DNA of 64,000 bases from Octopus sinensis. Taxonomy: Eukaryota. A program made the position numbers and the translations under genes. The stretch covers positions 59,272,001-59,336,000 of the forward strand of contig NC_043010.1 in NCBI RefSeq assembly GCF_006345805.1. Direction: 5' to 3'. How positions within the stretch are numbered: the stretch's first letter is position 1; each line of letters starts with the position of its first letter. This document shows, piece after piece, positions 52 through 57,189 of this stretch. The notes under the pieces are model-generated. The model worked only from the letters and a program-made list of their open reading frames with translations, did no database searches and was not told the DNA's origin.

Positions 52-237
52 AACATACAACTTCAGTGACACATGCAACCCTCTCCTAGCAGCAGACTCT
101 CTGCCTGACGTGCTACACTACTCCATCACCATAACAGCCATTCTCACACCATTACAGCAGCACTTACAATGGATCTTTCTACAACAATACATCTTTCTCT
201 TTCTCACTGAATAACCAATGATATAATTATTAAAAAG
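52..237 (+). other. Putative non-coding leader (5'UTR) exon of Pcdh gene 1
   Basis: 186-bp block AACATACAACTTCAG...TTATTAAAAAG repeated six times, once upstream of each Pcdh CDS; ends at donor AAG|GTAAGT (GT at 238); exact 5' end unknown. Confidence 0.75.
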
Positions 238-3200
238 GTAAGTTTCCATTTAATCTTTTTATAATCTCATTTGATAAAATAAATCTCACTGAATCCCTTT
301 AGCTATTGTTTTAACATATTTGATATTAACATGAGAACAAAGAGATTGAACAACATGAACAATATTTCCTACATATTCCTCAGTAATGTTATCTAAATTG
401 TTTTATCTCAAAATTAATTGAATGATATTATTTAAGATGTTTAATATTCAGACTTAATTCCATTGAAGCAGTATTATGTTTCTCTATAATATCTGGTACA
501 TGTATCGATAACTAACAATAGAGAACAGTTTACTTAATAAAGTGTTATAGATGTGTTTGTTTTACTGTAAGAAAGATGTAATCTTGATGGTATATGAGGG
601 CTATGTATTAAAGGATTTAATACAAAGCATGCAAAAACATGCTACAGTTCTTAAATATATCTGCTAACAGTATATAGATTGTAGTAGAAATGAGTCAGTG
701 GTATGTTAGACATTAGGCTGGACATAGAACCACTAGGAAGGAACAAAAATGGTGTCGTGTATTGCTAAAGTTCAGCAGTTTTAGAAATTGGTGAAATATA
801 TAGGATAGCATTGAAATATATATGTATTTTATGCATTTTCTCCCATGCTCAAGCATTTTAATTTATTTATAAGGACAATAAAAGTAAGCAAAATTTAAAG
901 GTAAATTTAATATTCAAGATACTCCAACAAAATATTTATCTTTATTATTATCATTATTCAGTTTTATGAAATATTAAAAGATTTAATATTACAAGAACAT
1001 TATTTTCGTTTCATTGGAATACTGTGTATACCTACTCTAAAACTGTGCATTCATTGTCATCGTTGTCATCATCACCATCATCATCAATGTCTTCTTCACC
1101 ATGATCCATGTTTTGAGATAACGAATATTATTTCTATCATAGGCTATTGTATTGTAAGTGAAAGATGTTGCATAGCATTGAAATATAGAAATATAATTTA
1201 TTTCAAAATTATATTTTCATTTTCCCTTTTTGCATAATTTTTTTTAATGGGTTCTACTCTTTACAGGAAGATAATCTGTGTATGTGTCAGTAAATGATAG
1301 GATGTGTGTGTGTGTGTGTGTTGTGTTGAACAGTAATACAAGGTGTTACTCATAGACAAAACATTGACGTAATAGCAAATGTACTTCCAACCAATGTTCA
1401 TCTATTGTTAGAGCCCCACAATTGAGTTTGGATTTGGACTCTTACTGTACTATTACATCTCGAACTAGTATTCTATTATATTGACCTCAGTACTTGACTG
1501 GTATTTTATTTTATCGACCCCAAAAGGATGGAAGGTACAGTTGGCTTTGAACTCAATGTAAAGAGCCACAACAAATACCACATGGCACACACCAATGAAT
1601 CTGCCAATCCACCATGCTACCCTGAATGTTACTTTAATAGCTTCAAATTCTATTTACATTTATCTTTCTGTAATATTCTTAATGTTCCTATCATTGTCCC
1701 TACTAAGCTTTTAAATGTTCCAATTTTAGAATATGTACTGCCGAAGTTAGTACACTAAGCTTTTAAATGGACAATAGAATAATTGTAGGCTCCATGAAAA
1801 AAACACAAAAAAACTTCAAATCCATAAGAGATACAGCAATAAAGGCTCACGAAAGCCTATGTGTTCGACTGTAACATTATTCAATACAAATTCAATTTAT
1901 ATGGTACTTTTTAAGATCAATAAGACCACTAGCATAGCTGGTGGGGATGGGGGTGATCCGCACCAGGTGGCACTTTTGGGTCTGCTTTAGGCAGTGTGTT
2001 TTTTGTGGGGTCCGGGGAGGCAGCAAATGGAAGGGCTGTCCCGCATGGCACACACTCTAGCTGTGCTTGTGAGTAAGACCCTTCTAAAGCACCACCACAT
2101 TGGGTCCAATTTTGTTTCTATATTTGCTTCCTTTTCACACTGTTTTGGATTAAAAGGAATTGATACAAAGGCAGACAATCAAGTTAATGATAGAATATTT
2201 TTTAAATTGTACCAAAATAATAAGTTATTGTTATACAGAGAATTTTGTTGAATTTATATGAGTTTCATATTGTTTCTTGAGACTAGAAATATGATCGATC
2301 TCTGCCAAAAGTTAGACAAATAAAACATTCTACATTTTTGAGAAATGCAATTAATTTGCAGCTTCAGGGAGTTAATTTATAATAATAATAATAATGAAAT
2401 TATTGTATACAGTGCTCAGATGCACCACAACTTGTCAAAAGTGCATATAAAGCATATGCAGTAATGTACAAATGTCTGGGAAGTGAACAGTGTATGAGTC
2501 AGATACATGCTTGCCATGTATATGGGGAGGGGGAGAAAATCAGGTGTAGTGTTGGCAAATCTCAGGAAGCATGGAAGTTTTGAAGGATGCAGTGCTCCGA
2601 CAACTAACAACTGATGCCAGCAGTTTGTTCCATGCTTCAGCAACTCTTAGCGTGAAAAAATGTTTCCGAAAGTTATGGGAGCTATGCTGTTTTCTGACTT
2701 TGTAAACATGTCCACGGGTGTTAGACGGGTGGAGTTTGAAAAGGTGCTCAGAGTTATTGTTTGTAAGATGGTTAATAATTTAACTCTTAACAACTGCAAA
2801 AATCTTGTTACATTTTTTTTCTTGAAAACTTGATTGTTTCCATCATAATCCTATTAAAGGAAGAATTTCATTAGTTTTAAGAACTCTCATCAAATGAAGA
2901 TGTTTGCAGTGGCAGGAGAAATTGAAGCATTCGGTTGTGACCCCAGTGAACTTAAAATGAATATAGAAAAATGATTTAGTGGTATTTTGAAACCATGACT
3001 TTATGGTGAATGCTTCTTCTGGAAATTCTGCTGAGGCTGGTGTGACATGTCAAGAAGCATTAAAACTGAGATATGTTAAATCAAGATATCTCTTACCTTT
3101 TACTTGTTTCAGCCGTTAGACTGTGGTCATGCTGGAGCACAGCCTTGAATTTTTAGTCAAATAAATTGACCTCAGTCCTTATGTTTTTAAATCTGGTACT

Positions 3201-3512
3201 TATTCTGTCTCTTTTTGCTGAACCATCTGTCAAGCAGGACTAGAACCTGTACCCCTCTGTCACCAGCTGAGTGCTCTAACTATTAAGTTAAACGGCCCAC
3301 TGACAACAATGTCCATCAAATTAAACACTAAATATCATAGCTTTTGGAAGCATTGAATGTGTTTCATATTTTACAGACAAGAAAGTAATAATTCATTGAA
3401 TTTTAATTTTGGTTGCTACCAAAACACTATTAAGATGCTAAAAAAAGTGACTACATTATACTAAAATTGTGAAAAGAAGTGTTTAATAACGGCTACCTTT
3501 GCCCACGCCCCT

Positions 3513-3757
3513 GGAGGCACGTGGCTTAGTGGTTAGAGTGTTGAACTCATGATCGTAAGGTTGTGGTTTCGATTCCTGGACCGGGCGATGCATTATGTTC
3601 TTGAGCAAAACACTTCATTTCACATTGCTCCAGTCCACTCAGCTAGCAAAAATGAGTAATCTTGCGACGGACTGGCGTCCCATCCAGCTGGGGAATTTCT
3701 CTGCCACTGAAACCGGGAAACCGGCCCTTATGAGCCTGGCATGGCTCAAGAAGGAAC
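3513..3757 (+). mobile_element. tRNA-derived SINE
   Basis: Pol III A box TGGCTTAGTGG and B box GGTTTCGATTCC followed by a non-tRNA body; no cloverleaf 3' end. Confidence 0.7.
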
Positions 3758-4712
3758 ATTCATTTATTTATTTATTTTGCCCACCCCCATATCTAGTTGA
3801 TTTAGGCTTCAGGGCTGTAGATTATATTGTCACCAAAAGTTGTCTGAAAATTGTTGAAAGAACAGGCATTTATTTCTTAAAAAATTCAAACCAAGCCCTC
3901 TTAAAATTTAGTTTCTTAGCATTAGGCTCTAGGAAATCCTTAAATACCAGTTAATTTCAATCAATTTTATTGTTTAATACAGGCTAAGTGTGTTTGAGTT
4001 TTTTTTTAATTTCTTCAGTTTAAATATTAGTGGGCTACATGTAAATTTTATCCTCCCAAAATTTAGAAATGGTGTTGCTAAGCATAAAAAGATTGAAGAA
4101 TACTGCTGTAATCCTTTCTTCAAACTACCCTGCATGTATAGCTTCCAATTTAGTAGTGCACATTACTTAACCTTCAACAAAGAGGTTTCAGGCTTAAGCA
4201 ATATACACACTTCATGCAAGCTATGCACTCTCCATTTATAAACTCCTTAAAAATGTTTGTCTCTTACTACACAAACACTGTAGACCTCCATCTAAAATTG
4301 TCCACCCAACAACTGACAATAATTCATTCACAAATACACTACAGCTGCTCGCTTTTTTGTCCTCAATCCTTAACAAGGCTCTGGATCTTTTAAGAATATC
4401 ATTTCCTGCAAATCATAGTAAATTCATCAAACCTCTCCTCTCACTGTTCTGTTGTATGCCACCTCTAGAGGAACAAAAGAAGCACATAACCAAGGGTTTA
4501 TTAGAATTTTCTTTCCAGATCTTAAAACTGTGCTGTAAGTATATTTAATTTCTTCCCATGCACTTGCTTCCAAAATAAATTGACCAGAAAATGTTATCAA
4601 AACTATTCCTCATAATGACAAAGTTTTTAAAAAAATCATATATCCTTCTGTTTTAGGTTCATTCCTGAGCATATCTGAAAATCTTCAACAAATACCAACA
4701 TACAGTAGCAAC

Positions 4713-7088
4713 ATGTTACTGCCATTGACCTTTGTATTGTCAATGGTCCACTGTGTACTGACCATAGACCTTACCTACCATGTGGAAGAAGAGAGAAGTC
4801 CAGGAACATATGTAGCAGACATTGCTGCCGATTCTAAACTTTTAGACAATGTTAAACCATCTGACCAACATTTGATAACATTCAGTCAATTCAAACGAAA
4901 GGTGGCACAGTTATTTAATATCACCAAAACAGGTAAACTGTACACTGCTCAGACACTGGATGCAGAAGATCTCTGCACATTCAACAAAGAATGTTCCAGA
5001 ACTGTGAAAGTTATTATAAAGAAAGTGGAAACTTTCACAAAAATATTAAAAGTCAAAATTGTAATACAAGACATCAATGATCACAACCCTGAGTTTCTTA
5101 AGAATAATGTCAATATACTGTTTAGTGAAAATGATCGTAAAGGTGCAAAACAATCAATACCAAATGCCATGGACAAAGATGTTGGATTTCAAAATTCCTT
5201 AATTCAATATAAATTAAAATCAAAGAATGGAGAACCATTCTCTCTGTCAGTGTCTAAAAGAGCTGACGGTATTTCTTCTCTTAAAATAGTTTTAAAAGAA
5301 ACATTGGACAGAGAAATCAAAGATACATATTTATTACAGGTCATAGCTAAAGATGGGGGTTCACCAGCAAAACAAGGGATTTTGAATATAAATATTTCTG
5401 TAATAGATGTGAATGACAACCCACCAGAGTTTTCAAAACCTCTCTATAATATATCTATACAAAGTACACATCATAAATCCAAACCCATCATTGTTTTGTC
5501 TGTAACAGATGCTGATTCTGGTGAAAATGGTAAAATTACTTTCCATTTCAGCCGAAAGACATCAGATGTAACAAAAAGCTATTTTCAGTTAAATGAAACA
5601 AGTGGAAACATTTTATTAAGCAAATTCTCAAGTTTGGGGAAAAAGAATACCTATGAATTATTTGTAGAGGCCAGAGATGGAGGCAGCCCCCCACTCAGTT
5701 CCATAGCAACTGTTCTAGTAAATGTCATCAACCAACACAATAATCCTCCATCTATGGATATAGATTATGTTTCTGCACTCAATTATAACACAGGAACCAT
5801 TTCTGAAAACATCAAAGTTGGTAGTTTCCTTGCTTATGTGATGGTCACTGACAATGATGTGGGACAAAATGGAGAGGTCAGCTGTGATATCAAACATGAT
5901 ACATTCAAACTACAGTCAATGGGATCTAAAGAATATAAAATCATTCTAAACAAACCAGTGGACAGAGAAACACAAGGACACTATAACATTCCTGTCTCCT
6001 GTCAAGATAAAGGATTACCTCCTCTTAAAAGTGTTAAAAGCCTCTCTATCCAAGTGACTGACATCAACGATGTACAACCACAGTTTACCAAAGATACATT
6101 CCAATTCCTCACCTACGAAAACAAAGATAAAGACTTCCCTATTGGTTTTGTCAATGCCACTGACCCTGATCTTGGATCTGCTGGACAACTCACATATTCT
6201 CTGCTGCGTAAAGAAAAATCCAATCTCCCATTTCTCATCACCAGTTATGGCTTCATTTCAGCGACCATGTCATTGGACAGAGAGAAACAAGATGTGTATA
6301 AGTTTGAGGTTTTTGTCAAAGATAATGGAAGCCCATCTCTGAATGACACAGCGAATGTTGTTGTTGAGATTCTAGATCAAAATGACAATGCTCCGTATTT
6401 TACATATCCTAGTAGTGACCCTTACACGCTAAATGTGCAGTACCATCCGCAGAGTAAGAGTGACATCACAGTTTTGAGAGCCTCTGATGGGGACAGTGGA
6501 AACAATGCTTTCCTCAGATATGCAATCATACAAGGAAATGATAAACAGTTGTTTAGTATGAACTCACACAGTGGTGCTTTATCCTTCTCCAGACAAGTTT
6601 ATCTAAATGATGCTGGAAGTTATGAGCTGGTGTTTGTTGTGAAGGACAGTGGTAGTCCAGTTCAGTCGTCAACAACTAGTGTCACTTTAGTATTGGCTGT
6701 TAGTAACGAGACATCACCAATGTCGAAGAGTGGACCTTTACAATCTTCAGGTCGGGTCCATATGACATGGGTTATTATCATTGTATCATCAGCAGTAATA
6801 ATATCAGTGGCGATTGTTGTTTCTATAACGCTGTGTATTATGAAATGTATTAAACACAGAGATAACACAGCTGCTGCCACAAAGAATACAGCCTACCAAG
6901 GTAGAGCAGAGATGAAACAATTGTTGTACCAGACTAACACTTCTGTTGCTATGTCGAGGAATGCAGAAGAGATGGTGAAGCGGAATATCTATTCTGAGAG
7001 ATCCAAGAGTGAATGTTATGCAGAAGGTCAGCTACAGAACAAATATGAATCTTCGGTTCAATCAAGAACTTTACCAAAACCTACCCCA
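4713..7088 (+). CDS. Pcdh: Protocadherin gene 1, main coding exon (signal peptide, EC1-EC6, TM, proximal tail; 792 codons)
   Basis: Six cadherin repeats (DxE, DxNDxxP, DxD, DGGxP motifs), C-X5-C in EC1, hydrophobic TM WVIIIVSSAVIISVAIVVSITLCIM; acceptor TTTTAG|G at 4656/4657; donor CCA|GTAAGT at 7088/7089 (the ORF track reads into the intron to 7133). Confidence 0.93.
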
Positions 7089-7259
7089 GTAAGTGGAAAC
7101 ATTACATTTTCTCTCTGTGAAAGTGAACAATGAAATCTCTTTGAATATGTTTTAACTTCAATAATACATTCCAATATTAAATTGTTCTCTTTCCATGTTG
7201 ATTGTAACTTCCATTGTTTGGTGTCTTCTCACATTTCTTTATCGTTTGTTTGTCAACAG

Positions 7260-7413
7260 AAATACTGTCAACCTGTTGTGGTGACATCAAGTGATGATGC
7301 TGTGGAAGATAATGCTACTATGGTTTGTAACTATACATCAGATACAATGTCATCCAAGAGAAGTGGTAGACAAGGAGACTTGAAACATTATGAAGAAATA
7401 CCAGGAGTATCGG
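7260..7413 (+). CDS. Pcdh: Pcdh gene 1 second coding exon (KYCQPVV...KHYEEIPGVS)
   Basis: Acceptor TTTGTCAACAG|AAA, phase 0, in frame with the upstream exon; donor G|GTTAGT; conserved in genes 1-5. Confidence 0.85.
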
Positions 7414-8026
7414 GTTAGTAACTACGTTGACAATATTTCACTTTGATCCCTTCTTAAATGTGAACTTTTCCATTTTAATAAATTTGTAGTTTATTTTGAG
7501 TAACATATTTACGATTATTAAACTAGGAGATGCTTATTTTATTTTTATTTTTCTGCCAATTAAACACCTGCGCTACTTATTCGATCTTCACTCATGTTTT
7601 TATTTGTGTTACTTTTAGTTTCTATGTCTGTCAAAGTTCTTTGAAATAAGCAGGACAATAGGAGACACACGAGAGAGATTGTCACTGATGGAATTTTGAC
7701 TGATGTATAAATTCAAAATGAAATGAATAAAAACTAGTGAAGATTGAATAGACAGTGTGTGTGTTTAGTTGGCAAAGAAAAGTGACCATCCCCAAGTATA
7801 ACAATATCCTTTTCAACCAAGAATCTTGCAAAACAAATATATAAATATAATATATTTACTATTTTATTCATTTTTATTTTCTTCTCAAAGCTTGAGAATA
7901 TTTTAAGTTTTCAATTTTATTTGTTCTAAGATTTTATATATTTTTTTATATATTTTGTTTGTGAATTTACAAAATTATGATACGAAAATCTTTTGTAAAT
8001 CTTTATATTTTGTATCTAAATTCCAG

Positions 8027-8103
8027 ATCAAAATATTTATAAAAATAACGATTCATCAACATCAAAAGACTGTAGTGAAGAAACACCTGTGAAACACGTG
8101 TAA
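8027..8103 (+). CDS. Pcdh: Pcdh gene 1 terminal coding exon (D-QNIYKNNDSSTSKDCSEETPVKHV*)
   Basis: Acceptor TTCCAG|AT completes a phase-1 codon; 24 codons then TAA; homologous 77-nt exon present in five units. Confidence 0.85.
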
Positions 8104-8260: not shown

Positions 8261-8278
8261 AATATATATATGTGTATG

Positions 8279-8329
<51 letters not shown>

Positions 8330-8679: not shown

Positions 8680-8710
8680 ATTGGTCTTCTGTTTAGGTCA
8701 TGCAGCCAAT
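8680..8710 (+). promoter_or_regulatory. Inverted CCAAT pair (ATTGG-N21-CCAAT), putative promoter of gene 2
   Basis: Same motif pair about 190-205 bp upstream of leader copies 2-6; TATA-like TATATAAATA near 8807. Confidence 0.6.
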
Positions 8711-8909
8711 CAGATTCCTGTAGAAGGAATTCACTAACAATGAAATTTACTCACACTATCGATGTTATTAAACCAAACAATTATGCTAAGTATACAGTAT
8801 TGTAGATATATAAATACATATCTCTATATATGTAATTAGTAATCATCTCTAAAAGTATATATATACACACACACACACAAAGTATCATCAGATGGACGTA
8901 CTCCCACAA

Positions 8910-9095
8910 AACATACAACTTCAGTGAGACATGCAACCCTCTCCTAGCAGCAGACTCTCTGCCTGACGTGCTACACTACTCCATCACCATAACAGCCATT
9001 GTCACACCATTACAGCAGCACTTACAATGGATCTTTCTACAACAATACATCTTTCTCTTTCTCACTGAATAACCAATGATATAATTATTAAAAAG
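8910..9095 (+). other. Putative non-coding leader exon of Pcdh gene 2
   Basis: 186-bp conserved block, donor AAG|GTAAGT at 9096. Confidence 0.75.
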
Positions 9096-12000: not shown

Positions 12001-13113
12001 ATGACAATATAGACTTCTGCTTCACCTGCTAAAAGTAACAGCTTCACCAACATCTTAAATATGGCTGAATATCCTGGATAATCAGCCAAGTTCTGGATAT
12101 AGATAATATACCTGAAAAAAAGAGAAGAGATGGTCGTAATTGGAACTCTTGTCAAACAATGAAAGCTCTAGTAGTACACTATTGCTCATTAGTGGTCTAA
12201 GTTCATTATGTTGTTTTACTGCTGCAGGTCTTTGCATTCTCTTGTGTTGGCTATGCGAAGGATAGAAGCTCAAAAAATGCTACTAAAAATTGTTAAAATT
12301 GTATGTAAAAGAAAGAGGAATATATTTGTGATAGTCATCATACATGTATATAAATGTGATTCGTGGTAGCAGCAAAGGATTAAATGTGGTTTGTGATGAC
12401 AGTAAAAGAGTGAATATGAGTGATGCTGTACAAAGTTTGCTTTAATTATCAACTCTAGTTTAGTTTGTTATTTATGATACAACTTCAAATTTGTCATCAA
12501 CTAAATTTGCATTTCTGAAATGAGAAGAACCAAAAGTTATTTTAGAAATAGAACTACTGAAAATAAGGGTTGTAGATAACATAATAATGGAGTAGACATC
12601 CTTGATATTGCTCAAAAGATTATCAGACATCTTCATCTTCATATTATCTGAAGAGTGTTTGAAAGGATTTGGGCTTGAAGCAAAGCTTTCAACAAACATT
12701 GCCTAACAATTTTTCATATTCATATCCTATTAAAAGAAATCAAGTAGGGAAAAGAAGGTCAACAATTGTAGAGTTCACTCTTTTAGTAACAACTAGAGTT
12801 TGAGATACAAAGCTGAAAAAATTTGTATTTTGCAAGGAAAATGTAACTAGGTTGTGTGAAGACTTCACTGGGAAGCTTCTTTTTATAAATTGAAAGCCTT
12901 CTTACAATCCATAGTACATTTTATTACATTCTATAATATTGTATCAGTAATTATGTCTCAACAATAATACCTTTTTTTGATGTTTCTAAATCTGTCTGAT
13001 GCCTAATGTCTCAAACTTCTTATATCTTTTCATTTGATTATCTACAAACTTATTTTTCGGTTTTAGGTTTAGTCCTCATCATATCTGAACAATAACCATT
13101 ATTATACAACAAT

Positions 13114-15487
13114 ATGTTCCTATCGTTGTCTATTGTATTGTCACTGGTCCACTGTGTTTTGACCATAGACCTTACCTACCATGTGGAAGAAGAGAGAAGT
13201 CCAGGAACGTATGTAGCAGACATTGCTGCCGATTCTAAACTTTTGGACAATGTTAAACCATCTGACCAACATTTGATAACATTCAGTCAATTCAAACGAA
13301 AGGTGGCACAGTTATTTAATATCACCAAAACAGGTAAACTGTACACTGCTCAGACACTGGATGCAGAAGATCTCTGCACATTCAACAAAGAATGTTCCAG
13401 AACTGTGAAAGTTATTATAAAGAAAGTGGATAGTTTCACAAAAATATTAAAAGTCAAAATAGTAATAGAAGATATTAATGACCATGAACCTAAATTTCCT
13501 ATAAAGAATGTCAACATAGAGTTTGGAGAAGATGCCCGCATCAGTTCAAAAAGATCACTACCGAATGCCATAGACAAAGATGTTGGATTTCAAAATTCCT
13601 TAATTCAATATAAATTAAAATCAAAGAATGGAGAACCATTCTCTCTGTCAGTGTCTAAAAGAGCTGATGGTATTTCTTCACTTAATATAGTTTTAAAAGA
13701 AACATTAGACAGAGAAATGAAAGATACGTATTTATTACAGGTCATAGCTAAAGATGGAGGGTCACCAGCAAAACAAGGTATTCTAAATATAAATATTTCC
13801 ATAACAGATTTGAATGACAACCCACCAGAGTTTTCTAAACCTCTCTATAATATATCCATACAAAGTGCACATCACAAAGCTAAGCCCATCATTGTTTTGT
13901 CTGTGACTGATGCTGATTCTGGTGAAAATGGTAAAATTACTTTCCACTTCAGTCCAAAGACATCAGATCTAGCAAAAAGCTATTTCCTGTTAAATGAAAC
14001 CAGTGGAAATATTTTCTTAAGTAAATATTCGAGTCTAGGTAAAAAGAAAACTTATGAATTGTTTATTGAAGCCAGAGATGGGGGCACCCCACCCTTTAGT
14101 TCTATAGCAACAGTTCTAGTGAATGTTATCAACCAACACAATAATCCTCCATCTATGAATATAGATTATGTCTCTGCACTCAATTATAACACAGGTACCA
14201 TCTCTGAAAACATCAAAGTTGGTAGTTTCATTGCTTATGTGATGGTCACTGACAATGATGTGGGACAAAATGGAGAGGTCAGCTGTGATATCAAACATGA
14301 TACATTCAAACTACAGTCAATGGGATCTAAAGAATATAAAATCATTCTAAACAAACCAGTGGACAGAGAAACACAAGGACACTATAACATTCCTGTCTCC
14401 TGTCAAGATAAAGGATTACCTCCTCTGAAAAGTGTTAAAAGCCTCTCTATCCAAGTGACTGACATCAACGATGTACAACCACAGTTTACCAAAGATACAT
14501 TCCAATTCCTCACCTACGAAAACAAAGATAAAGACTTCCCTATGGTTTTGTCAATGCCACTGACCCTGATCTTGGATCTGCTGGACAACTCACATATTCT
14601 CTGCTGCGTAAAGAAAAATCCAATCTCCCATTTCTCATCACCAGTTATGGCTTCATTTCAGCGACCATGTCATTGGACAGAGAGAAACAAGATGTGTATA
14701 AGTTTGAGGTTTTTGTCAAAGATAATGGAAGCCCATCTCTGAATGACACAGCGAATGTTGTTGTTGAGATTCTAGATCAAAATGACAATGCTCCGTATTT
14801 TACGTATCCTAGTAGTGACCCTTACACGCTAAATGTGCAGTACCATCCGCAGAGTAAGAGTGACATCACAGTTTTGAGAGCGTCTGATGGGGACAGTGGA
14901 AACAATGCTTTCCTCAGATATGCAATCATACAAGGAAATGATAAACAGTTGTTTAGTATGAACTCACACAGTGGTGCTTTATCCTTCTCCAGACAAGTTT
15001 ATCTAAATGATGCTGGAAGTTATGAGCTGGTGTTTGTTGTGAAGGACAGTGGTAGTCCAGTTCAGTCGTCAACAACTAGTGTCACTTTGGTATTGGCTGT
15101 TAGTAACGAGACATCACCAATGTCGAAGAGTGGACCTTTACAATCTTCAGGTCGGGTCCATATGACATGGGTTATTATCATTGTATCATCAGCAGTAATA
15201 ATATCAGTGGCTATTGTTGTTTCTATAACGCTGTGTATTATGAAATGTATTAACACAGAGATAACACAGCTGCTGCCACAAAGAATACAGCCTACCAAGG
15301 TAGAGCAGAGATGAAACAATTGTTGTACCAGACTAACACTTCTGTTGCTATGTCGAGGAATGCAGAAGAGATGGTGAAGCGGAATATCTATTCTGAGAGA
15401 TCCAAGAGTGAATGTTATGCAGAAGGTCAGCTACAGAACAAATATGAATCTTCAGTTCAGTCGAGAACTTTACCAAAACCTACCCCA
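13114..15487 (+). pseudogene. Pcdh: Protocadherin gene 2 main exon with two 1-bp deletions (pseudogene or assembly errors)
   Basis: Acceptor at 13066/13067 and donor at 15487/15488; exon is 2374 nt versus 2376 in paralogs; missing T near 14543 (CCTATGG vs CCTATTGG) and missing A near 15253 (TTAACAC vs TTAAACAC); split into three ORFs in the track. Confidence 0.75.
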
Positions 15488-15658: not shown

Positions 15659-15812
15659 AAATACTGTCAACCTGTTGTGGTGACATCAAGTGATGATGCT
15701 GTGGAAGATAATGCTACTATGGTTTGTAACTATACATCAGATACAATGTCATCCAAGAGAAGTGGTAGACAAGGAGACTTGAAACATTATGAAGAAATAC
15801 CAGGAGTATCAG
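15659..15812 (+). CDS. Pcdh: Pcdh gene 2 second coding exon
   Basis: Near-identical to 7260-7413; donor G|GTTAGC. Confidence 0.8.
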
Positions 15813-19769: not shown

Positions 19770-19846
19770 ATCAAAATATATATAAAAACAATGGCACCTC
19801 TACATCAAAAGATTCCAGTGAAGAGACACCAGTGAAACATGTGTAA
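19770..19846 (+). CDS. Pcdh: Pcdh gene 2 terminal coding exon (D-QNIYKNNGTSTSKDSSEETPVKHV*)
   Basis: TTCCAG|AT acceptor, intact 77-nt exon. Confidence 0.8.
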
Positions 19847-20428: not shown

Positions 20429-20458
20429 ATTGGTCTCCTGTTTGGGTATTCAACCAAT
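20429..20458 (+). promoter_or_regulatory. Inverted CCAAT pair, putative promoter of gene 3
   Basis: ATTGG-N20-CCAAT about 192 bp upstream of leader copy 3. Confidence 0.6.
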
Positions 20459-20649
20459 CAGATCCTCACTAAAACCCAGAAAGAAACCACTCACAAAGAT
20501 ATTCACATTACTGATGTTTAACTATAGAAAATTGCAGTCATTCAAACATACACCTAAATGTATTTAAATGATCGTTGGCCATGATAAAGAAACATTATCT
20601 TTAAGGATAAATACATACAGAATATTATTAGATGGACGTACTCCCACAA

Positions 20650-20835
20650 AACATACAACTTCAGTGACACATGCAACCCTCTCCTAGCAGCAGACTCTCT
20701 GCCTGACGTGCTACACTACTCCATCACCATAACAGCCATTGTCACACCATTACAGCAGCACTTACAATGGATCTTTCTACAACAATACATCTTTCTCTTT
20801 CTCACTGAATAACCAATGATATAATTATTAAAAAG
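20650..20835 (+). other. Putative non-coding leader exon of Pcdh gene 3
   Basis: 186-bp conserved block, donor at 20836. Confidence 0.75.
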
Positions 20836-23991: not shown

Positions 23992-24265
23992 AGTGTCCTG
24001 TCAAGAACTAAATAATAAAACCAACAATATATCTAATGTCATAACATGTCAGTATATCCAGATTTTATTTACTTGACTTTCTTCTATGAAACACTACTAA
24101 TATCATTTATTTGAAAACATCATGATGATTATATTGTAATATCAATATTCTTATAATTTATGACTGATTAAATAAATAATTAATTAATTCAATCACATTT
24201 CTATTTAAGGTTCAATCTTCACCATACTTGGACGACTTTACCTAGTAGCAACACACAGCTTCAAA

Positions 24266-26806: not shown

Positions 26807-26960
26807 AAATACTGTCAACCTGTTGTGGTGACATCAAGTGATGATGCTGTGGAAGATAATGCTACTATGGTTTGTAACTATACATCAGATACAATGTCAT
26901 CCAAGAGAAGTGGTAGACAAGGAGACTTGAAACATTATGAAGAAGTACCAGGAGTATCAG
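26807..26960 (+). CDS. Pcdh: Pcdh gene 3 second coding exon
   Basis: Near-identical 154-nt exon (YEEVP variant); canonical splice sites. Confidence 0.85.
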
Positions 26961-28334: not shown

Positions 28335-28411
28335 ATCAAAATATTTACAAAAATAACGATACATCTACTTCAAAAGATTCCAGTGAAGAAACACCTGTGA
28401 AACATGTATGA
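28335..28411 (+). CDS. Pcdh: Pcdh gene 3 terminal coding exon (D-QNIYKNNDTSTSKDSSEETPVKHV*)
   Basis: TTCCAG|AT acceptor, TGA stop. Confidence 0.85.
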
Positions 28412-28918: not shown

Positions 28919-28949
28919 ATTGGTCCTTTATTGAAGTCATTCAACCAAT
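28919..28949 (+). promoter_or_regulatory. Inverted CCAAT pair, putative promoter of gene 4
   Basis: ATTGG-N21-CCAAT about 204 bp upstream of leader copy 4. Confidence 0.6.
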
Positions 28950-29152
28950 CAGATTCTCACTAAAACATAGAATGAAGTCACTTAGAAAGCTAAGCATTTA
29001 CATTATTGATGTTATTAAACCAAACAGTTATGTTTAACTATAAAATATTGCTGCTATTTAAATATAACTCTGTATATATCTAAATATTCACTAATAATCT
29101 TCTTTAAGGATAAATACATACAAAATAATATCAGACAGATGTACTCTCACAA

Positions 29153-29337
29153 AACATACAACTTCAGTGACACATGCAACCCTCTCCTAGCAGCAGACTC
29201 TCTGCCTGACGTGCTACACTACTCCATCACCATAACAGCCATTGTCACACCATTACAGCAGCACTTACAGTGGATCTTTCTACAACAATACATCTTTCTC
29301 TTTCTCACTGAATAACCAATGATATAATTATAAAAAG
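29153..29337 (+). other. Putative non-coding leader exon of Pcdh gene 4
   Basis: 185-bp copy (1-bp deletion, one A>G), donor at 29338. Confidence 0.75.
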
Positions 29338-35085: not shown

Positions 35086-36132
35086 TGTACACCAGCTTTT
35101 CCTACCAAACAAAATATATACACAAGTATTTCTCTGACAGAGCTTCATGGCTATTGCCACCCTACATCAGCCACTTGTTTTTACATACAGCTTGCAATGC
35201 AGAGAACTCCTTTCATTGACTATCAACTGAAGATTGCAATGATGTCAGCATGTTCTGACAGAATTGCTCTCTCGAGTGGTGCTAAGTACCACTTATACAA
35301 CCAGTTATGTGCAGGTTCTTTTTTGTCTACACTTTTGTACATTTTATCCCATTGTCATCCATGCAGCCATCACTTCAAACTAGGAACTGCCATAACCATT
35401 CTAACCATACAGCAACCATTCTGTTTTACCACTTACTGAAGATTTTCATCACTCACAGCCTCAATCTTTCTCTCACATGTGTCTAGCATACCCATGAGGA
35501 AGCATTTTCTACTTTGCCTTTCAGCTTATGACTCATTGTTTTGAAGTCCTTCAAAGTGCAGTGCCAACCCAGTAGTACATAATAGGTCCAGTTAGAACAA
35601 AAATAGGTAGATTGTACTTTTTTCCCAAACTACCATCTCCCTTCTAACAGTGACATCAAATAACATCACAGACTATACTCAAAAGACTAAAATATGAGGA
35701 ATTACATTTATGAAAGTGAAAGAACACTCACAGCCACCATGTGTGACTACTACAAAGAAACAATAAGAATAGCATACAAAGGATATGTTCGATTTATCAT
35801 CGATTATGCATTTTCTGTATCAATACCCTTATTCTCTCCACAACAAATTATGGCAAGTAACACATGGATATGAAGTGGCATGGTATGATGTCACACAAAG
35901 TTCCATCTCTTACAGGATCTCTCACAGCTTAGAATAATGACAGGGAAAAGTAATGAACATTTCCATTCATTCTCTGCTAAATTTACACACAAAAATTATG
36001 TACTGATCTCTTTGTTGCATGAATCAATGTGTAATATATAAAAATTGAAATTGAGGAAATTGTATTTCTATTTCAGGTTCAATCTTCATCATTCCTGAAC
36101 AGATTCAACCAATTCCAACGCTCAAAATCAAC

Positions 36133-38508
36133 ATGTTACTGTCGTTGTGTATTGTATTGTCACTGGTCCACTGTGTCCTGACCATAGACCTTACTTACCA
36201 TGTGGAAGAAGAGAGAAGTCCAGGAACATATGTAGCAGACATTGCTGCCGATTCTAAACTTTTAGACAATGTTAAACCATCTGACCAACATCTGATAACA
36301 TTCAGTCAATTCAAACGAAAGGTGGCACAGTTATTTAACATCACCAAAACAGGTAAACTGTACACTGCTCAGACACTGGATGCAGAAGATCTCTGCACAT
36401 TCAACAAAGAATGTTCCAGAACTGTGAAAGTTATTATAAAGAAAATGGAATCATTCACAAAAATATTAAAAGTCAAAATTGTAATAGAAGATATCAATGA
36501 CCATGAACCAGAGTTTCCTTTAAGGAACGTAAATATACAATTTGATGAAAATGACCGTAAAGGTTCTCAAGTATCACTACCGAATGCCATAGACAAAGAT
36601 GTTGGATTTCAAAATTCCTTAATACAATATAAATTAAAATCAAAGAATGGAGAACCATTCTCTCTGTCAGTGTCTAAAAGAGCTGATGGTATTTCTTCTC
36701 TGAAAATAGTTTTAAAAGAATCATTGGACAGAGAAGTCAAAGATACGTATTTATTACAGGTCATAGCTAAAGATGGTGGGTCACCAGCAAAACAAGGTAT
36801 TTTGAATATAAATATCTCTATAACAGATGCAAATGACAACCCACCAGAGTTTTCTAAACCTCTATACAATATATCCATACAAAGTGCACATCACAAATCT
36901 AAACCCATCATTATTTTGTCTGTAACTGATGCTGATTCAGGTGAAAATGGTAAAATTACTTTCCATTTCAGCCCCAAAACATCAGATTTGGCAAAAAGCT
37001 ATTTTCAGTTAAATGTAACCAATGGAAACATTTTCTTGAGTAAATACTCCAAGTTGGAAAAAAAGAAAACCTATGAATTATTTGTAGAGGCCAGGGATGG
37101 AGGCAGTCCTCCACTCAATTCCATTGCAACTGTTCTGGTAAATGTCATCAACCAACACAATAATCCTCCATCTATGGATATAGATTATGTCTCTGCACTC
37201 AATTATAACACAGGTACCATCTCTGAAAACATCAAAGTCGGTAGTTTCATTGCTTATGTGATGGTCACTGACAATGATGTGGGACAAAATGGAGAGGTCA
37301 GCTGTGATATCAAACATGATACATTCAAACTACAGTCAATGGGATCTAAAGAATATAAAATCATTCTAAACAAACCAGTGGACAGAGAAACACAAGGACA
37401 CTATAACATTCCTGTCTCCTGTCAAGATAAAGGATTACCTCCTCTCAAAAGTGTTAAAAGCCTCTCTATCCAAGTGACTGACATCAACGATGTACAACCA
37501 CAGTTTACCAAAGATACATTCCAATTCCTCACCTACGAAAACAAAGATAAAGACTTCCCTATTGGTTTTGTCAATGCCACTGACCCTGATCTTGGATCTG
37601 CTGGACAACTCACATATTCTCTGCTGCGTAAAGAAAAATCCAATCTCCCATTTCTCATCACCAGTTATGGCTTCATTTCAGCGACCATGTCATTGGACAG
37701 AGAGAAACAAGATGTGTATAAGTTTGAGGTTTTTGTCAAAGACAATGGAAGCCCATCTCTGAATGACACAGCGAATGTTGTTGTGGAGATTCTAGATCAA
37801 AATGACAATGCTCCGTATTTTACATATCCTAGTAGTGACCCTTACACGCTAAATGTGCAGTACCATCCGCAGAGTAAGAGTGACATCACAGTTTTGAGAG
37901 CCTCTGATGGGGACAGTGGAAACAATGCTTTCCTCAGATATGCAATCATACAAGGAAATGATAAACAGTTGTTTAGTATGAACTCACACAGTGGTGCTTT
38001 ATCCTTCTCCAGACAAGTTTATCTAAATGATGCTGGAAGTTATGAGCTGGTGTTTGTTGTGAAGGACAGTGGTAGTCCAGTTCAGTCGTCAACAACTAGT
38101 GTCACTTTGGTGTTGGCTGTTAGTAACGAGACATCACCAATGTCGAAAAGTGGACCTTTACAATCTTCAGGTCGGGTCCATATGACATGGGTTATTATCA
38201 TTGTATCATCAGCAGTAATAATATCAGTGGCTATTGTTGTTTCTATAACGCTGTGTATTATGAAATGTATTAAACACAGAGATAACACAGCTGCTGCCAC
38301 AAAGAATACAGCCTACCAAGGTAGAGCAGAGATGAAACAATTGTTGTACCAGACTAACACTTCTGTTGCTATGTCGAGGAATGCAGAAGAGATGGTGAAG
38401 CGGAATATCTATTCTGAGAGATCCAAGAGTGAATGTTATGCAGAAGGTCAGCTACAGAACAAATATGAATCTTCAGTTCAGTCGAGAACTTTACCAAAAC
38501 CTACCCCA
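36133..38508 (+). CDS. Pcdh: Protocadherin gene 4 main coding exon (792 codons)
   Basis: Intact ORF with six EC repeats and TM; acceptor TTTCAG|G at 36076/36077; donor CCA|GTAAGT. Confidence 0.93.
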
Positions 38509-38679: not shown

Positions 38680-38833
38680 AAATACTGTCAACCTGTTGTG
38701 GTGACATCAAGTGATGATGCTGTGGAAGATAATGCTACTATGGTTTGTAACTATACATCAGATACAATGTCATCCAAGAGAAGTGGTAGACACGGAGACT
38801 TGAAACATTACGAAGAAATACCAGGAGTATCAG
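38680..38833 (+). CDS. Pcdh: Pcdh gene 4 second coding exon
   Basis: Near-identical 154-nt exon. Confidence 0.85.
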
Positions 38834-42001: not shown

Positions 42002-42078
42002 ACCAAAATATTTATAAAAACAATGGGACGTCTGCATCAAAAGATTCTAGTGAAGAAACACCAGTGAAACAAGTGTAA
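42002..42078 (+). CDS. Pcdh: Pcdh gene 4 terminal coding exon (D-QNIYKNNGTSASKDSSEETPVKQV*)
   Basis: TTCCAG|AC acceptor, TAA stop. Confidence 0.85.
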
Positions 42079-42852: not shown

Positions 42853-43038
42853 AACATACAACTTCAGTGACACATGCAACCCTCTCCTAGCAGCAGACTC
42901 TCTGCCTGACGTGCTACACTACTCCATCACCATAACAGCCATTGTCACACCATTACAGCAGCACTTACAATGGATCTTTCTACAACAATACATCTTTCTC
43001 TTTCTCACTGAATAACCAATGATATAATTATTAAAAAG
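42853..43038 (+). other. Putative non-coding leader exon of Pcdh gene 5
   Basis: 186-bp conserved block, donor at 43039. Confidence 0.75.
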
Positions 43039-45440: not shown

Positions 45441-45491
<51 letters not shown>

Positions 45492-48400: not shown

Positions 48401-48853
48401 CAGCACCGCATCAAAATTACCAACCAACACATAACTATGATTAGACTACTTTCTCATTATGTATATTCAATCAACTCTACTTTGCTGCTCTGACTATTGG
48501 GACCACCCAGCAAAACCCAGGCAATCTTATCATTACTCTCTTTTCATGCTTGGAACAGATTTAACATATCATACAAAGTTTACTCCACATTGTTACATCT
48601 CTTTACAATCTACTAGCATTCTATTCCAAATAAATTTCTCACAAACACTGAACACTAGCCATATTAACTTTACTCACTAATCATTACTCTAGGTTATAAG
48701 ATGGAGGGAGTGTTCACTACACCTCATTCGCAATATTTTATTCAGTTATGGGTATTAAACAATAATTGTAATTGAGGAAATTGTTGTTCTGTTTTAGGTT
48801 CATTCCTGAGCATATCTGAAGATCTTTAACAAATACCAACATCCAGCAGCAAC

Positions 48854-51229
48854 ATGTTACTGCCATTGACCTTTGTATTCTCACTGGTCCAGTGTGTCCT
48901 GACCATAGACCTTACCTACCATGTGGAAGAAGAGAGAAGTCCAGGAACATATGTAGCAGACATTGCTGCCGATTCTAAACTCTTAGACAATGTTAAACCA
49001 TCTGACCAACATTTGATAACATTCAGTCAATTCAAACGAAAGGTGGCACAGTTATTTAACATCACCATAACAGGTAAACTGTACACTGCTCAGACACTGG
49101 ATGCAGAAGATCTCTGCACATTCAACAAAGAATGTTCTAGAACTGTCAAAGTTATTATAAAGAAAGTGGATAGCTTCACAAAAATATTAAAAGTCAAAAT
49201 TGTAATAGAAGACATCAATGACCACGAACCAGAGTTTCCTATAAAGAATGTGAATATACAATTTGATGAAGACATTGGTAAAGGTGCAAAAAGATCAATA
49301 CCAAATGCCATAGATGATGACATAGGTTTTCAAAATTCATTAATACAATATAAATTAAAATCAAAGAATGGAGAACCATTCTCTCTATCAGTTTCTAAAA
49401 GAGCTGATGGTATTTCTTCTCTTAAAATAGTTTTGAAAGAATCATTAGACAGAGAAATCAAAGATACATATTTATTACAAGTCATAGCTAAAGATGGAGG
49501 TTCGCCAGCAAAACAAGGTGTTTTAAATATAAATATTTCTATAACAGATGTGAATGACAACCCACCTGTATTTTCTAAACCTTTCTATAATATATCCATA
49601 CAAAGTACACATCACAAATCCAAACCCATCATTGTTTTATCTGTAACAGATGCTGATTCAGGTGAAAATGGTAAAATTACTTTCCATTTCAGTCCAAAGA
49701 CATCAGATTTAGCCAAAAGCTATTTTCTTTTAAATGAAACCAGTGGAAGCATTTTCTTGAGTAAATACTCCAAGTTGGAAAAAAAGAAAACCTATGAACT
49801 GTTCATAGAGGCCAGGGACGGAGGCAGCCCTCCACTCAATTCCATTGCAACTGTTCTGGTAAATGTCATCAACCAACACAATAATCCTCCATCTATGGAT
49901 ATAGATTATGTTAATGCACTCAATTATAACACAGGTACCATCTCTGAAAACATCAAAGTCGGTAGTTTCATTGCTTATGTGATGGTCACTGACAATGATG
50001 TGGGACAAAATGGAGAGGTCAGCTGTGGTATCAAACATGATACATTCAAACTACAGTCAATGGGATCTAAAGAATATAAAATCATTCTCAACAAACCAGT
50101 GGACAGAGAAACACAAGGACACTATAACATTCCTGTCTCCTGTCAAGATAAAGGATTACCTCCTCTGAAAAGTGTTAAAAGCCTCTCTATCCAAGTGACT
50201 GACATCAACGATGTACAACCACAGTTTACCAAAGATACATTCCAATTCCTCACCTACGAAAACAAAGATAAAGACTTCCCTATTGGTTTTGTCAATGCCA
50301 CTGACCCTGATCTTGGATCTGCTGGACAACTCACATATTCTCTGCTGCGTAAAGAAAAATCCAATCTCCCATTTCTCATCACCAGTTATGGCTTCATTTC
50401 AGCGACCATGTCATTGGACAGAGAGAAACAAGATGTGTATAAGTTTGAGGTTTTTGTCAAAGACAATGGAAGCCCATCTCTGAATGACACAGCGAATGTT
50501 GTTGTTGAGATTCTAGATCAAAATGACAATGCTCCGTATTTTACATATCCTAGTAGTGACCCTTACACGCTAAATGTGCAGTACCATCCGCAGAGTAAGA
50601 GTGACATCACAGTTTTGAGAGCGTCTGATGGGGACAGTGGAAACAATGCTTTCCTCAGATATGCAATCATACAAGGAAATGATAAACAGTTGTTTAGTAT
50701 GAACTCACACAGTGGTGCTTTATCCTTCTCCAGACAAGTTTATCTAAATGATGCTGGAAGTTATGAGCTGGTGTTTGTTGTGAAGGACAGTGGTAGTCCA
50801 GTTCAGTCGTCAACAACTAGTGTCACTTTGGTATTGGCTGTTAGTAACGAGACATCACCAATGTCGAAGAGTGGACCTTTACAATCTTCAGGTCGGGTCC
50901 ATATGACATGGGTTATTATCATTGTATCATCAGCAGTAATAATATCAGTGGCTATTGTTGTTTCTATAACGCTGTGTATTATGAAATGTATTAAACACAG
51001 AGATAACACAGCTGCTGCCACAAAGAATACAGCCTACCAAGGTAGAGCAGAGATGAAACAATTGTTGTACCAGACTAACACTTCTGTTGCTATGTCGAGG
51101 AATGCAGAAGAGATGGTGAAGCGGAATATCTATTCTGAGAGATCCAAGAGTGAATGTTATGCAGAAGGTCAGCTACAGAACAAATATGAATCTTCAGTTC
51201 AGTCGAGAACTTTACCAAAACCTACCCCA
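48854..51229 (+). CDS. Pcdh: Protocadherin gene 5 main coding exon (792 codons)
   Basis: Intact ORF with six EC repeats and TM; acceptor at 48797/48798; donor CCA|GTAAGT. Confidence 0.93.
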
Positions 51230-51400: not shown

Positions 51401-51554
51401 AAATACTGTCAACCTGTTGTGGTGACATCAAGTGATGATGCTGTGGAAGATAATGCTACTATGGTTTGTAACTATACATCAGATACAATGTCATCCAAGA
51501 GAAGTGGTAGACAAGGAGACTTGAAACATTATGAAGAAATACCAGGAGTATCAG
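51401..51554 (+). CDS. Pcdh: Pcdh gene 5 second coding exon
   Basis: Near-identical 154-nt exon; donor G|GTTAGC. Confidence 0.85.
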
Positions 51555-53679: not shown

Positions 53680-53717
<38 letters not shown>

Positions 53718-53744
53718 TTCTTATACACACACACACACACACAC

Positions 53745-56208: not shown

Positions 56209-56285
56209 ATCAAAGTATTTATAAAAACAATGACACATCTACATCAAAAGATTCTAGTGAAGAAACACCAGTGAAACATGTCTAA
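56209..56285 (+). CDS. Pcdh: Pcdh gene 5 terminal coding exon (D-QSIYKNNDTSTSKDSSEETPVKHV*)
   Basis: TTTCAG|AT acceptor, TAA stop. Confidence 0.85.
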
Positions 56286-56782
56286 TTAAACTGCCATTGA
56301 AGTGTCACAACTACTTTTCTCAATAAAAATATACAATATCACTATACAATACACAAACAGCATTAACATACACTTTGTTTATTAATTCCGCTATATCAGT
56401 ATATTCTGCAGAAACAAGTCTATAAATAAGCCATAATGTTAATTTAATTACTAAAGATTACATTGTGTTGATTAATGAATTATTATTAAATATATTCAGT
56501 TGGTGAACTTTTCAAATATTTTGTATATGTTCATCATTAACATTCCAATTACTTTAAAATTTACTCCACAATGTATAGATAATTAATGCAAGGAGTAGAG
56601 AACCAAAAATAAATTCTCATGATTGAAAAAAAAAGCATTTTAGTGAAAATTACGGCAGTATTTTCTGAGATTTAAAAAGAAATGTATTTAAAATTTTACC
56701 TAGCTATCAATATTACCAAGACCTGATTAAGGGATGAATGTCTCACCTTCTCCCAACAAATCAGTAGTAAAGGAGCAACATC

Positions 56783-56813
56783 ATTGGTCTTCTGTTTAGG
56801 TCATTCAACCAAT
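56783..56813 (+). promoter_or_regulatory. Inverted CCAAT pair, putative promoter of gene 6
   Basis: ATTGG-N21-CCAAT about 191 bp upstream of leader copy 6; TATATAAATA near 56915. Confidence 0.6.
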
Positions 56814-57003
56814 CAGATTCTCTCTAAAACATGCAAAGAAACCACTAAGAAAGCTAAGCATTCGCATTACTGGTGTTATTAAACCAGTTATGTTTAAATG
56901 TAGAATATTCTAGCTATATAAATACACATCTATATATCTATATATATGTAGACTGTCATAAGTAACAATAGACAAACATCATCTTTAAGGACAAATGCTT
57001 ACA

Positions 57004-57189
57004 AACATACAACTTCAGTGACACATGCAACCCTCTCCTAGCAGCAGACTCTCTGCCTGACGTGCTACACTACTCCATCACCATAACAGCCATTGTCACA
57101 CCATTACAGCAGCACTTACAATGGATCTTTCTACAACAATACATCTTTCTCTTTCTCACTGAATAACCAATGATATAATTATCAAAAAG
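57004..57189 (+). other. Putative non-coding leader exon of Pcdh gene 6
   Basis: 186-bp conserved block, donor AAG|GTAAGT at 57190. Confidence 0.75.

Follow-up and report, generated by a model that had tools for sequence, protein, structure and literature searches.

A near-identical 186-nt leader upstream of each gene in an Octopus sinensis protocadherin array: a probable non-coding first exon homogenized by gene conversion

This study concerns a 64,000-nt window of the Octopus sinensis genome (contig NC_043010.1, positions 59,272,001 to 59,336,000 of the forward strand, assembly GCF_006345805.1). It holds an array of protocadherin (Pcdh) genes and a 186-nt block, here termed the leader, that is present in six copies, one for each protocadherin unit (u1–u6). 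Cephalopods expanded protocadherins independently of vertebrates, and to our knowledge nothing is known about the regulation of the hundreds of cephalopod Pcdh genes. The leader appears to be the first exon of these genes, and the near-identity of its copies seems to owe more to gene conversion than to constraint on every nucleotide.

Six long open reading frames (ORFs) in the window were identified as protocadherins, each with five Cadherin domains and a Cadherin_2 domain in Pfam. Their closest proteins are ‘protocadherin beta-like’ entries of ∼868 aa from Octopus vulgaris and O. sinensis. Mapping of these 868-aa proteins onto the window by tblastn, together with the splice sites, generated a four-exon gene model. 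The leader comes first and is followed by a 2.4 kb exon 2, which contains the remainder of the 5′ untranslated region (5′UTR), the ATG, extracellular cadherin domains EC1 to EC6, the transmembrane (TM) segment and part of the cytoplasmic tail, and which ends in CCA/GTAAGT, the slash marking the splice junction. Two small C-terminal exons complete the gene. Exon 3 codes for ∼51 aa and exon 4 for ∼25 aa plus the stop codon. The next leader begins 718–806 nt past the stop codon of the preceding gene, whose last coding exon accounts for a repeat of ∼100 nt seen ∼900 nt before each leader. As judged from homology and splice signals, the locus is a tandem array of four-exon O. sinensis protocadherin genes (Table 1).

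The reading frame of exon 2 in unit 2 (13114–15487) is broken by two 1-nt deletions relative to unit 1, at 14542 and 15251, while its leader and splice sites are intact. Either unit 2 is a pseudogene or the deletions are errors of assembly. Unit 6 (62450–63313) departs from the homogenized sequence near the end of exon 2, earlier than units 1–5, and has a longer intron 2 and an exon 3 that has diverged to 58% protein identity. The reference annotation, RefSeq XP_036365284.1 (P0135), is a 5410-aa ‘uncharacterized protein’ with a 100% match to units 3, 4 and 5, which places the window on O. sinensis chromosome CM016872.1 or on a sequence identical to it. It is a fusion of at least six neighboring genes, units 2–6 and beyond, in which the donors of exon 3 or exon 4 are joined to the exon-2 acceptor of the next gene and 5′UTR segments are translated. 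The fusion is an annotation artifact of the homogenized array, and P0135 was rejected as leader evidence because it joins neighboring genes. The model given here, with leader, promoter and four exons, is offered in place of that 5410-residue artifact.

The six leaders were located by alignment and by nhmmer. All are on the + strand with 0–2 differences each from the consensus, as a sequence-only reading of this DNA had described. A 32-mer of the block occurred 6 times in the window and 0 times in 100 shuffles. Within the block, units 2–6 had a mean pairwise identity of 99.1% with gaps counted as mismatches; for the flanking 100 nt the value dropped to 52% on the upstream side and 73% on the downstream side. 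The fall in identity outside the block that had been noted earlier was thus confirmed, as was the longer common flank of units 4 and 5, which are 91% identical over 953 nt around the leader. Indels are crowded at both leader edges in the alignment of the copies, and the identity tract runs on to ∼18 nt past the leader donor. The leader is rich in C (30%) and poor in G (10%). The same reading had placed the conservation of the block above that of the coding sequence. This held against EC2-3 and the last coding exon but failed against EC1 (97–99%) and the tract from EC4 to exon 3 (98–100%).

The comparison set spanned four species (O. sinensis, O. vulgaris, O. bimaculoides and Argonauta hians) and 272 kb in total. 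It contained 22 leader copies, and 22/22 are located upstream of a Pcdh gene, one for each gene and on the strand of the gene, with none elsewhere or inverted. Within this set the block was restricted to Pcdh 5′ ends, a point that the sequence-only reading had proposed to check. Among related genes, homologous leaders were found in A. hians (two in L002, four in L010) and in O. vulgaris (L001, L011 and L012). More distant subfamilies also have the leader. Subfamily B comprises O. bimaculoides P0014 (L005) and its Argonauta orthologue P0015, with 66% protein identity to the window genes and the leader 8.2–8.6 kb upstream. Subfamilies C and D come from O. sinensis (L007 and L009), their proteins being 59% and 52% identical, respectively, to those of the window. 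No leader was found in the small O. bimaculoides contig L004. The two Argonauta L002 leaders are 100% identical to each other, and three leaders from the independent O. vulgaris assembly match the O. sinensis consensus at 98.9–100%. Octopus and Argonauta leaders share 80% identity, and the orthologous leaders of subfamily B are 83% identical.

Not all leaders are uniform. The four leaders of Argonauta L010 (BAAFZT010000037.1; 587–771, 8241–8425, 14802–14986 and 22987–23171) belong to the same subfamily and have only 46–63% mutual identity. In O. vulgaris L011 (OX597827.1, ∼5888–6073) the leader of P0004, an array neighbor, is ∼54% identical to the homogenized type and has a CA/CG-rich microsatellite inside the exon, yet the core motifs described below and the AAG/GTAAG donor are kept. 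For the O. vulgaris P0001 gene (L001, 1–10000) the 10 kb upstream contain no leader, and homology to the window genes starts only 7 nt before its ATG. This gene has either a different 5′ structure or a first intron of >10 kb. In the subfamily C genes a transposon-like ORF, Helitron/PIF-like by eye only, is located in intron 1 (L007 306–725 and 8762–9133). The 135-aa N-terminal extension of RefSeq P0025 was rejected as leader evidence because it is such a transposon-like ORF in intron 1.

The splice signals at both ends of the putative first intron are conserved. All six leaders end in AAG/GTAAGT, and in all six genes a pyrimidine tract and AG/GTT form an exon-2 acceptor 47–56 nt 5′ of the ATG, in line with what had been read from the letters. 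The acceptor is kept in Argonauta and is also the one used by the RefSeq model XP_036365284.1. O. vulgaris, the six Argonauta copies and subfamilies C and D all keep the GTAAG donor; in subfamily B the site reads GTATTT. The leader itself has stops in all three frames, and its upstream ORFs (uORFs) are only 2–13 codons long and not conserved. The three upstream ATGs (uATGs) are not conserved either, as unit 4 is without one and Argonauta and subfamilies B–D are without others. No conserved acceptor, that is an AG with a pyrimidine tract, was seen at the 5′ edge of the leader in the Octopus and Argonauta alignments. An internal exon, or a 3′ exon of the upstream gene, was set aside on that ground as less likely.

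Promoter-like sequences lie upstream of the leader. The CCAAT box 8-mer CCAATCAG has only four + strand occurrences in the window, each of them 195–208 nt upstream of a leader, and is found in 6/6 Argonauta promoters. A TATA-like ATAAATA is located at −35 to −43 in 7/13 subfamily A promoters, including O. vulgaris and five from Argonauta. From the comparison as a whole the block is very probably exon 1, with its start site at the identity block or ∼10–15 nt 5′ of it. No close protein fragment came up when the N-terminal 150 aa were used as the query. The exon case rests on comparison. The earlier proposal of a shared first exon thus stands on a donor and acceptor conserved in three genomes and four subfamilies, on the CCAAT and TATA-like matches and on the lack of an acceptor at the 5′ edge.

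Conservation within the leader is uneven. Positions kept in ≥80% of ten independent lineages were grouped into motif blocks, and these define a core at leader positions ∼36–122 whose blocks are retained in the leaders of the four octopod Pcdh subfamilies (A–D). The blocks are TAGCAGCAG at 36–44, CTG..TGA at 50–57 (in the form CTGcCTGA), CTA.T.CATCA.CAT at 67–81 (containing the form CCATCAaCAT), CATTGTCACA at 88–97 and A.TA..GCAGCA.TTA.A.TG.A at 100–122 (containing GCAGCA). The spacing between them varies by small indels. A weaker block is conserved at 157–170, and the donor is also conserved. Two composite patterns, CATCAnYAY-n2-9-YATTKTYA and TAGCWGCWG-n4-9-CTR-n2-TGA, gave 14 and 12 matches respectively in the 272 kb, all on the + strand and all inside leaders. 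The leader motif signature is short and specific and can be used for a genome-wide search and treated as a candidate shared regulatory element.

Between genera the leaders are 80–83% identical versus 54–64% for their flanks. Since orthologous leaders differ by 17–20% and non-homogenized paralogous leaders by 37–54%, selection appears to be limited to the short-motif core. The sequence-only reading had singled out two other motifs, a CRE-like TGACGT and an E-box CACATG. Both are present in the block, but Argonauta has TGACAT and CACACA in their place and subfamilies B–D have neither, and this part of the reading was dropped. RNA-structure covariation, which it had also raised, was looked for with RNAalifold over 8 leaders and gave 0 consensus pairs. 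The single-sequence minimum free energy of the leader was non-significant (z = −1.5), and the window contained no Rfam match and no tRNA. CATTGT may resemble a Sox-type site. In the sequence comparison the core resembles a series of short binding sites for proteins, which could be read on DNA just downstream of the start or on an unstructured 5′UTR, and its recurrence in distant octopod Pcdh genes may reflect a shared regulatory element.

The near-identity of whole leaders has parallels elsewhere in the same genes. The tract from EC4 to exon 3 and the EC1 tract are homogenized between units at the identities given above. The former includes the non-coding intron 2 (7089–7259 in unit 1), which is 98–99% identical in units 1–5. 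Because a non-coding intron is homogenized, the homogenizing process ignores function. EC2-3, by comparison, differs between units by 12–32% of nucleotides. In a neighbor-joining (NJ) tree of EC2-3, monophyly of the genera Octopus and Argonauta was recovered in 0/100 bootstraps, unit 3 grouped with Argonauta P0009–11 and apart from units 1, 4, 5 and 6, and the nearest neighbor of 9/10 Argonauta genes was an Octopus gene. In the EC4-to-cytoplasmic tree both genera were monophyletic in 100/100 bootstraps, with distances of 0.005–0.008 within a genus and 0.105 between them. Taken together, the two trees indicate that some paralogue lineages are older than the Octopus/Argonauta split while part of each gene is species-specific.

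The leader behaves like a homogenized tract, with 99.2% identity within the window versus 80% between Octopus and Argonauta. Its 150-nt flanks are 60–71% identical between window units and 59–64% identical between genera, the unrelated baseline being 48%. Since the flanks are equally diverged between units and between genera, window leaders would be expected near 80% identity without conversion. The genes of L010 and P0004 share the homogenized 3′ coding tract despite diverged leaders. The L010 case, with diverged leaders and a homogenized EC4-to-cytoplasmic tract, argues that leader and coding tracts are homogenized independently. The existence of unconverted leaders (L010, 46–63%; P0004, ∼54%) also makes identity of the whole leader dispensable. 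Sequence comparison therefore points to concerted evolution by gene conversion, and not to nucleotide-level constraint, as the source of leader near-identity. The earlier wording, ‘maintained by selection or conversion’, can be divided accordingly: conversion for the identity of the whole exon and selection only for the short motif core.

One short segment at the 5′ end of the mRNA escapes this uniformity. The exon-2 part of the 5′UTR and the first codons are ∼65% identical between units (4657–4730, 13067–13131, 24210–24283, 36077–36150, 48798–48871 and 60117–60187). Flanked by the identical leader and the 97–99% identical EC1, this segment alone marks the 5′ end of an mRNA as belonging to a particular gene. 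Because only these ∼75 nt at the start of exon 2 are gene-specific, short-read CAGE or RNA-seq is unable to assign a leader to its gene.

Table 1. Positions of leaders, coding exons, promoter-like motifs and example homogenized tracts in the window.
Feature	Position	Strand	Details	Basis
Leader (putative non-coding exon 1), unit 1	52..237	+	core 87–173; 1 difference from consensus; donor 237/238	alignment, nhmmer
Leader, unit 2	8910..9095	+	core 8945–9031; 1 difference from consensus; donor 9095/9096	alignment, nhmmer
Leader, unit 3	20650..20835	+	core 20685–20771; identical to consensus; donor 20835/20836	alignment, nhmmer
Leader, unit 4	29153..29337	+	core 29188–29274; 1 substitution (loses uATG2) and 1-nt deletion	alignment, nhmmer
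Leader, unit 5	42853..43038	+	core 42888–42974; identical to consensus	alignment, nhmmer
Leader, unit 6	57004..57189	+	core 57039–57125; 1 difference from consensus	alignment, nhmmer
CCAAT box CCAATCAG	8706..8713	+	−204 from unit 2 leader	
CCAAT box CCAATCAG	20454..20461	+	−196 from unit 3 leader	
CCAAT box CCAATCAG	28945..28952	+	−208 from unit 4 leader	
CCAAT box CCAATCAG	56809..56816	+	−195 from unit 6 leader	
TATA-like ATAAATA	20607..20613	+	−43 from unit 3 leader	
TATA-like ATAAATA	29110..29116	+	−43 from unit 4 leader	
Exon 2, unit 1	4657..7088	+	56-nt 5′UTR part, ATG 4713, EC1–EC6, TM, partial cytoplasmic tail; donor CCA/GTAAGT	
Exon 2, unit 2	13067..15487	+	ATG 13114; 1-nt deletions at 14542 and 15251	
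Exon 2, unit 3	24210..26635	+	ATG 24266	
Exon 2, unit 4	36077..38508	+	ATG 36133	
Exon 2, unit 5	48798..51229	+	ATG 48854	
Exon 2, unit 6	60117..62545	+	ATG 60170; end placed by homology	
Exon 3, unit 1	7260..7413	+		tblastn, splice sites
Exon 3, unit 2	15659..15812	+		tblastn, splice sites
Exon 3, unit 3	26807..26960	+		tblastn, splice sites
Exon 3, unit 4	38680..38833	+		tblastn, splice sites
Exon 3, unit 5	51401..51554	+		tblastn, splice sites
Exon 3, unit 6 (approximate)	63167..63311	+		tblastn, splice sites
Exon 4, unit 1, coding part with stop	8027..8103	+	next leader 806 nt on	tblastn, splice sites
Exon 4, unit 2, coding part	19770..19846	+	next leader 803 nt on	tblastn, splice sites
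Exon 4, unit 3, coding part	28335..28411	+	next leader 741 nt on	tblastn, splice sites
Exon 4, unit 4, coding part	42002..42078	+	next leader 774 nt on	tblastn, splice sites
Exon 4, unit 5, coding part	56209..56285	+	next leader 718 nt on	tblastn, splice sites
Homogenized tract example, unit 1, EC4 to exon 3, including non-coding intron 2 (7089–7259)	5830..7420	+	98–100% identity, units 1–5	
Homogenized EC1 tract example, unit 1	4731..5030	+	97–99% identity	

The window also contains repetitive DNA. A dispersed repeat of ∼180 nt is found in both orientations in introns and intergenic DNA (16009–16195, 19368–19529, 33183–33367, 51751–51938, 53746–53917 and 55671–55856), and dinucleotide microsatellites are located at 8262–8410, 19239–19275, 19949–20026, 45441–45490 and 53680–53747. 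A 163-aa ORF on the − strand (52315–52806), in a G+C-richer stretch between units 5 and 6, resembles a fragment of a non-LTR retrotransposon protein by eye only.

The observations are best accommodated by a joint reading, to which we assign a probability of about 0.72: the leader is non-coding exon 1 behind its own promoter, its identity is due to gene conversion, and selection acts on the motif core. The promoter of each gene would carry a CCAAT box at about −200 and a TATA-like box at about −43. Splicing at AAG/GTAAGT over an intron of 2.9–6.7 kb to the acceptor 47–56 nt before the ATG would then generate a 5′UTR of ∼240 nt; transcription and splicing are here inferred from the conserved signals. 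Conversion between paralogues would homogenize the leader, the EC1 tract and the EC4-to-exon-3 tract. At the leader it would be confined to the exon probably because the exon evolves more slowly than its indel-crowded flanks and so remains the only stretch with usable homology for a heteroduplex. Purifying selection would act on about five short motif blocks (∼36–122) and on the donor. The core would serve as a shared cis-regulatory module, made up of factor-binding sites just downstream of the start or of a single-stranded 5′UTR element.

Several points weigh against this reading. The CCAAT and TATA-like matches are absent upstream of the subfamily B–D leaders, so that the promoter model applies to subfamily A alone. 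The start site implied by the TATA-like box falls 10–15 nt 5′ of the identity block and not at its edge. Two Logan RNA contigs with Pcdh transcripts (L003 and L008, retrieved by exact-protein look-up) are from other species, and their 5′UTRs are non-homologous to the leader. At 186 nt, the island of homology is close to the shortest length known to support efficient conversion in other animals, and only inference explains why tract ends and exon ends match so sharply.

Other explanations were weighed on the same evidence. The one we rate highest among them, although still unlikely, is that the block is a DNA-level regulatory element only, either promoter-downstream or an enhancer, and that GTAAGT is incidental. 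The motif-like conservation with variable spacing is what clusters of factor-binding sites look like, no RNA structure was found, and the leader is read as an exon from comparison. An incidental GTAAGT is hard to reconcile with its persistence, as GTAAGT(T), after the blocks of subfamilies A, C and D and of every Argonauta copy although the block itself has diverged by 40–55%, even allowing for GTATTT in B. Strand also matters, as all copies are on the strand of the gene and the composition is strand-asymmetric, and every ATG is preceded by a conserved acceptor. We felt that a dispersed repeat or transposon fragment lying upstream of these genes by chance was very unlikely. Dispersed repeats and retroelement fragments do occur in the window, but every leader in the 272 kb is present once per gene, upstream and on the gene's strand with none inverted, the copies of the window array start 720–810 nt past the previous stop, and there is no tRNA or Rfam similarity. 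Collapse of paralogue reads during assembly or polishing is about as improbable. The two single-base deletions of unit 2 could be assembly errors, and the RefSeq annotation there is a fused 5410-aa model. The three O. vulgaris leaders that match the consensus come from an independent assembly and argue against such an artifact, Argonauta repeats the pattern with its own sequence, and the flanks are clearly distinct in every copy.

Whether the identity needs conversion at all is a separate matter. If every nucleotide were under purifying selection, the leader would be an ultraconserved promoter or 5′UTR element, for example one that equalizes promoters for stochastic choice. The step from 99% to 52–73% exactly at the block edges is what such a constraint would produce, and leaders are indeed more conserved than flanks between species. 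Orthologous leaders that are 17–20% different between genera, however, contradict full constraint and make it improbable, as do the divergent leaders of Argonauta L010 and of O. vulgaris P0004 with its internal microsatellite. The unit 4 substitution removes an upstream ATG, the frameshifted unit 2 still has an intact leader, and a non-coding intron of the same genes is just as uniform. Very young whole-unit tandem duplicates, whose leaders have not had time to diverge, are an equally improbable source. In EC2-3, units 1, 4, 5 and 6 do cluster in a clade confined to Octopus, the long flank is common to units 4 and 5, and lineage-specific duplication has been proposed for cephalopod Pcdhs (PMC9068888). 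Young duplicates would not be expected to have intron 1 and intergenic DNA that are largely unalignable between units, leader flanks as diverged between units as between genera or EC2-3 as different as measured here, and unit 3 has a consensus leader although its EC2-3 belongs to a lineage common to Argonauta. Homogenization via spliced RNA or cDNA would account for the agreement between tract ends and exon ends, since the leader tract starts near the presumed start site and stops ∼18 nt past the donor. We give this route the least credence of all and regard it as excluded because intron 2 is homogenized while the exon-2 5′UTR segment and first codons, which are part of the same mRNA, are diverged.

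With conversion retained as the preferred explanation, leader identity is, on present sequence comparison, ordinary concerted evolution and not an ultraconserved element. The array gives sequence evidence for mosaic concerted evolution, in which EC2-3 and the signal-peptide/5′UTR tag are diverse and EC1, EC4-to-exon-3 and the leader are homogenized, with parallels in vertebrates. What appears to be new from the sequences is a leader architecture and motif core conserved across octopod Pcdh subfamilies. In the literature searched, which did not include Albertin et al. 2015, we found neither a leader exon nor a common 5′ element described for octopus Pcdh genes.

The sequence-only reading had suggested a functional analogue of the conserved sequence element (CSE) of vertebrate clustered Pcdhs. 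That element is ∼22 bp long, has a CGCT box, lies upstream of each variable exon and is bound by CTCF (reviewed in PMC7811963). The analogy fits in one respect: like the CSE, the octopus core is a short signature found once per gene at the 5′ end of divergent cluster Pcdh genes, here subfamilies A–D. It fails in others. The octopus leader has no CGCT or AGCG, a single CpG and no sequence similarity to the CSE, and by eye it has no resemblance to a CTCF site. The core is at +36 to +122 of a putative spliced exon, ∼3–8 kb from the ATG, whereas the CSE is in an untranscribed promoter beside the coding exon. We put forward tentatively, as a possibility that we consider rather doubtful, that the core (TAGCAGCAG, CTGcCTGA, CCATCAaCAT, CATTGTCACA and GCAGCA) is an octopod-wide signature of clustered Pcdhs that evolved independently of the CSE to play the same part. 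A common DNA- or RNA-binding factor would coordinate or choose family members, and conversion would keep neighboring promoters and 5′UTRs interchangeable. If this were true, identical leaders would leave an mRNA with no record of which promoter fired.

Mammalian olfactory receptor genes have upstream non-coding exons and a coding sequence largely in one exon. The predicted octopus genes are similar to them in that the first exon is short and non-coding, the first intron is long, an acceptor lies just before the ATG and the families are arranged in tandem. We know of no olfactory receptor leaders that are kept near-identical among neighbors or that have a family-wide motif core. Spliced-leader (SL) trans-splicing in nematodes, flatworms, tunicates and others also gives many mRNAs the same leader, ending at a GT donor. 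A trans-spliced leader was rejected for the octopus array because each gene has one cis copy with its own promoter and neither a separate SL RNA gene nor an Sm site nor any structure turned up.

For cephalopod Pcdh arrays, gene conversion has been raised only as a general suggestion (PMC9068888, PMC6339937), and octopus Pcdhs are without constant exons (PMC9068888). In vertebrate clustered Pcdhs, according to Noonan et al. 2004 (Genome Res 14:354) as cited in PMC6339937, conversion homogenizes the membrane-proximal and cytoplasmic parts and EC2-3 stays diverse. The octopus array is alike in that membrane-proximal ectodomains and the cytoplasmic region are homogenized within species while EC2-3 retains trans-species lineages. 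It is unlike the vertebrate clusters in also homogenizing an intron and a 186-nt non-coding tract 3–7 kb from the coding exon. The window is thus a clear octopod case of Pcdh conversion, and one that adds a short non-coding tract to the parts of the gene on which conversion appears to act.

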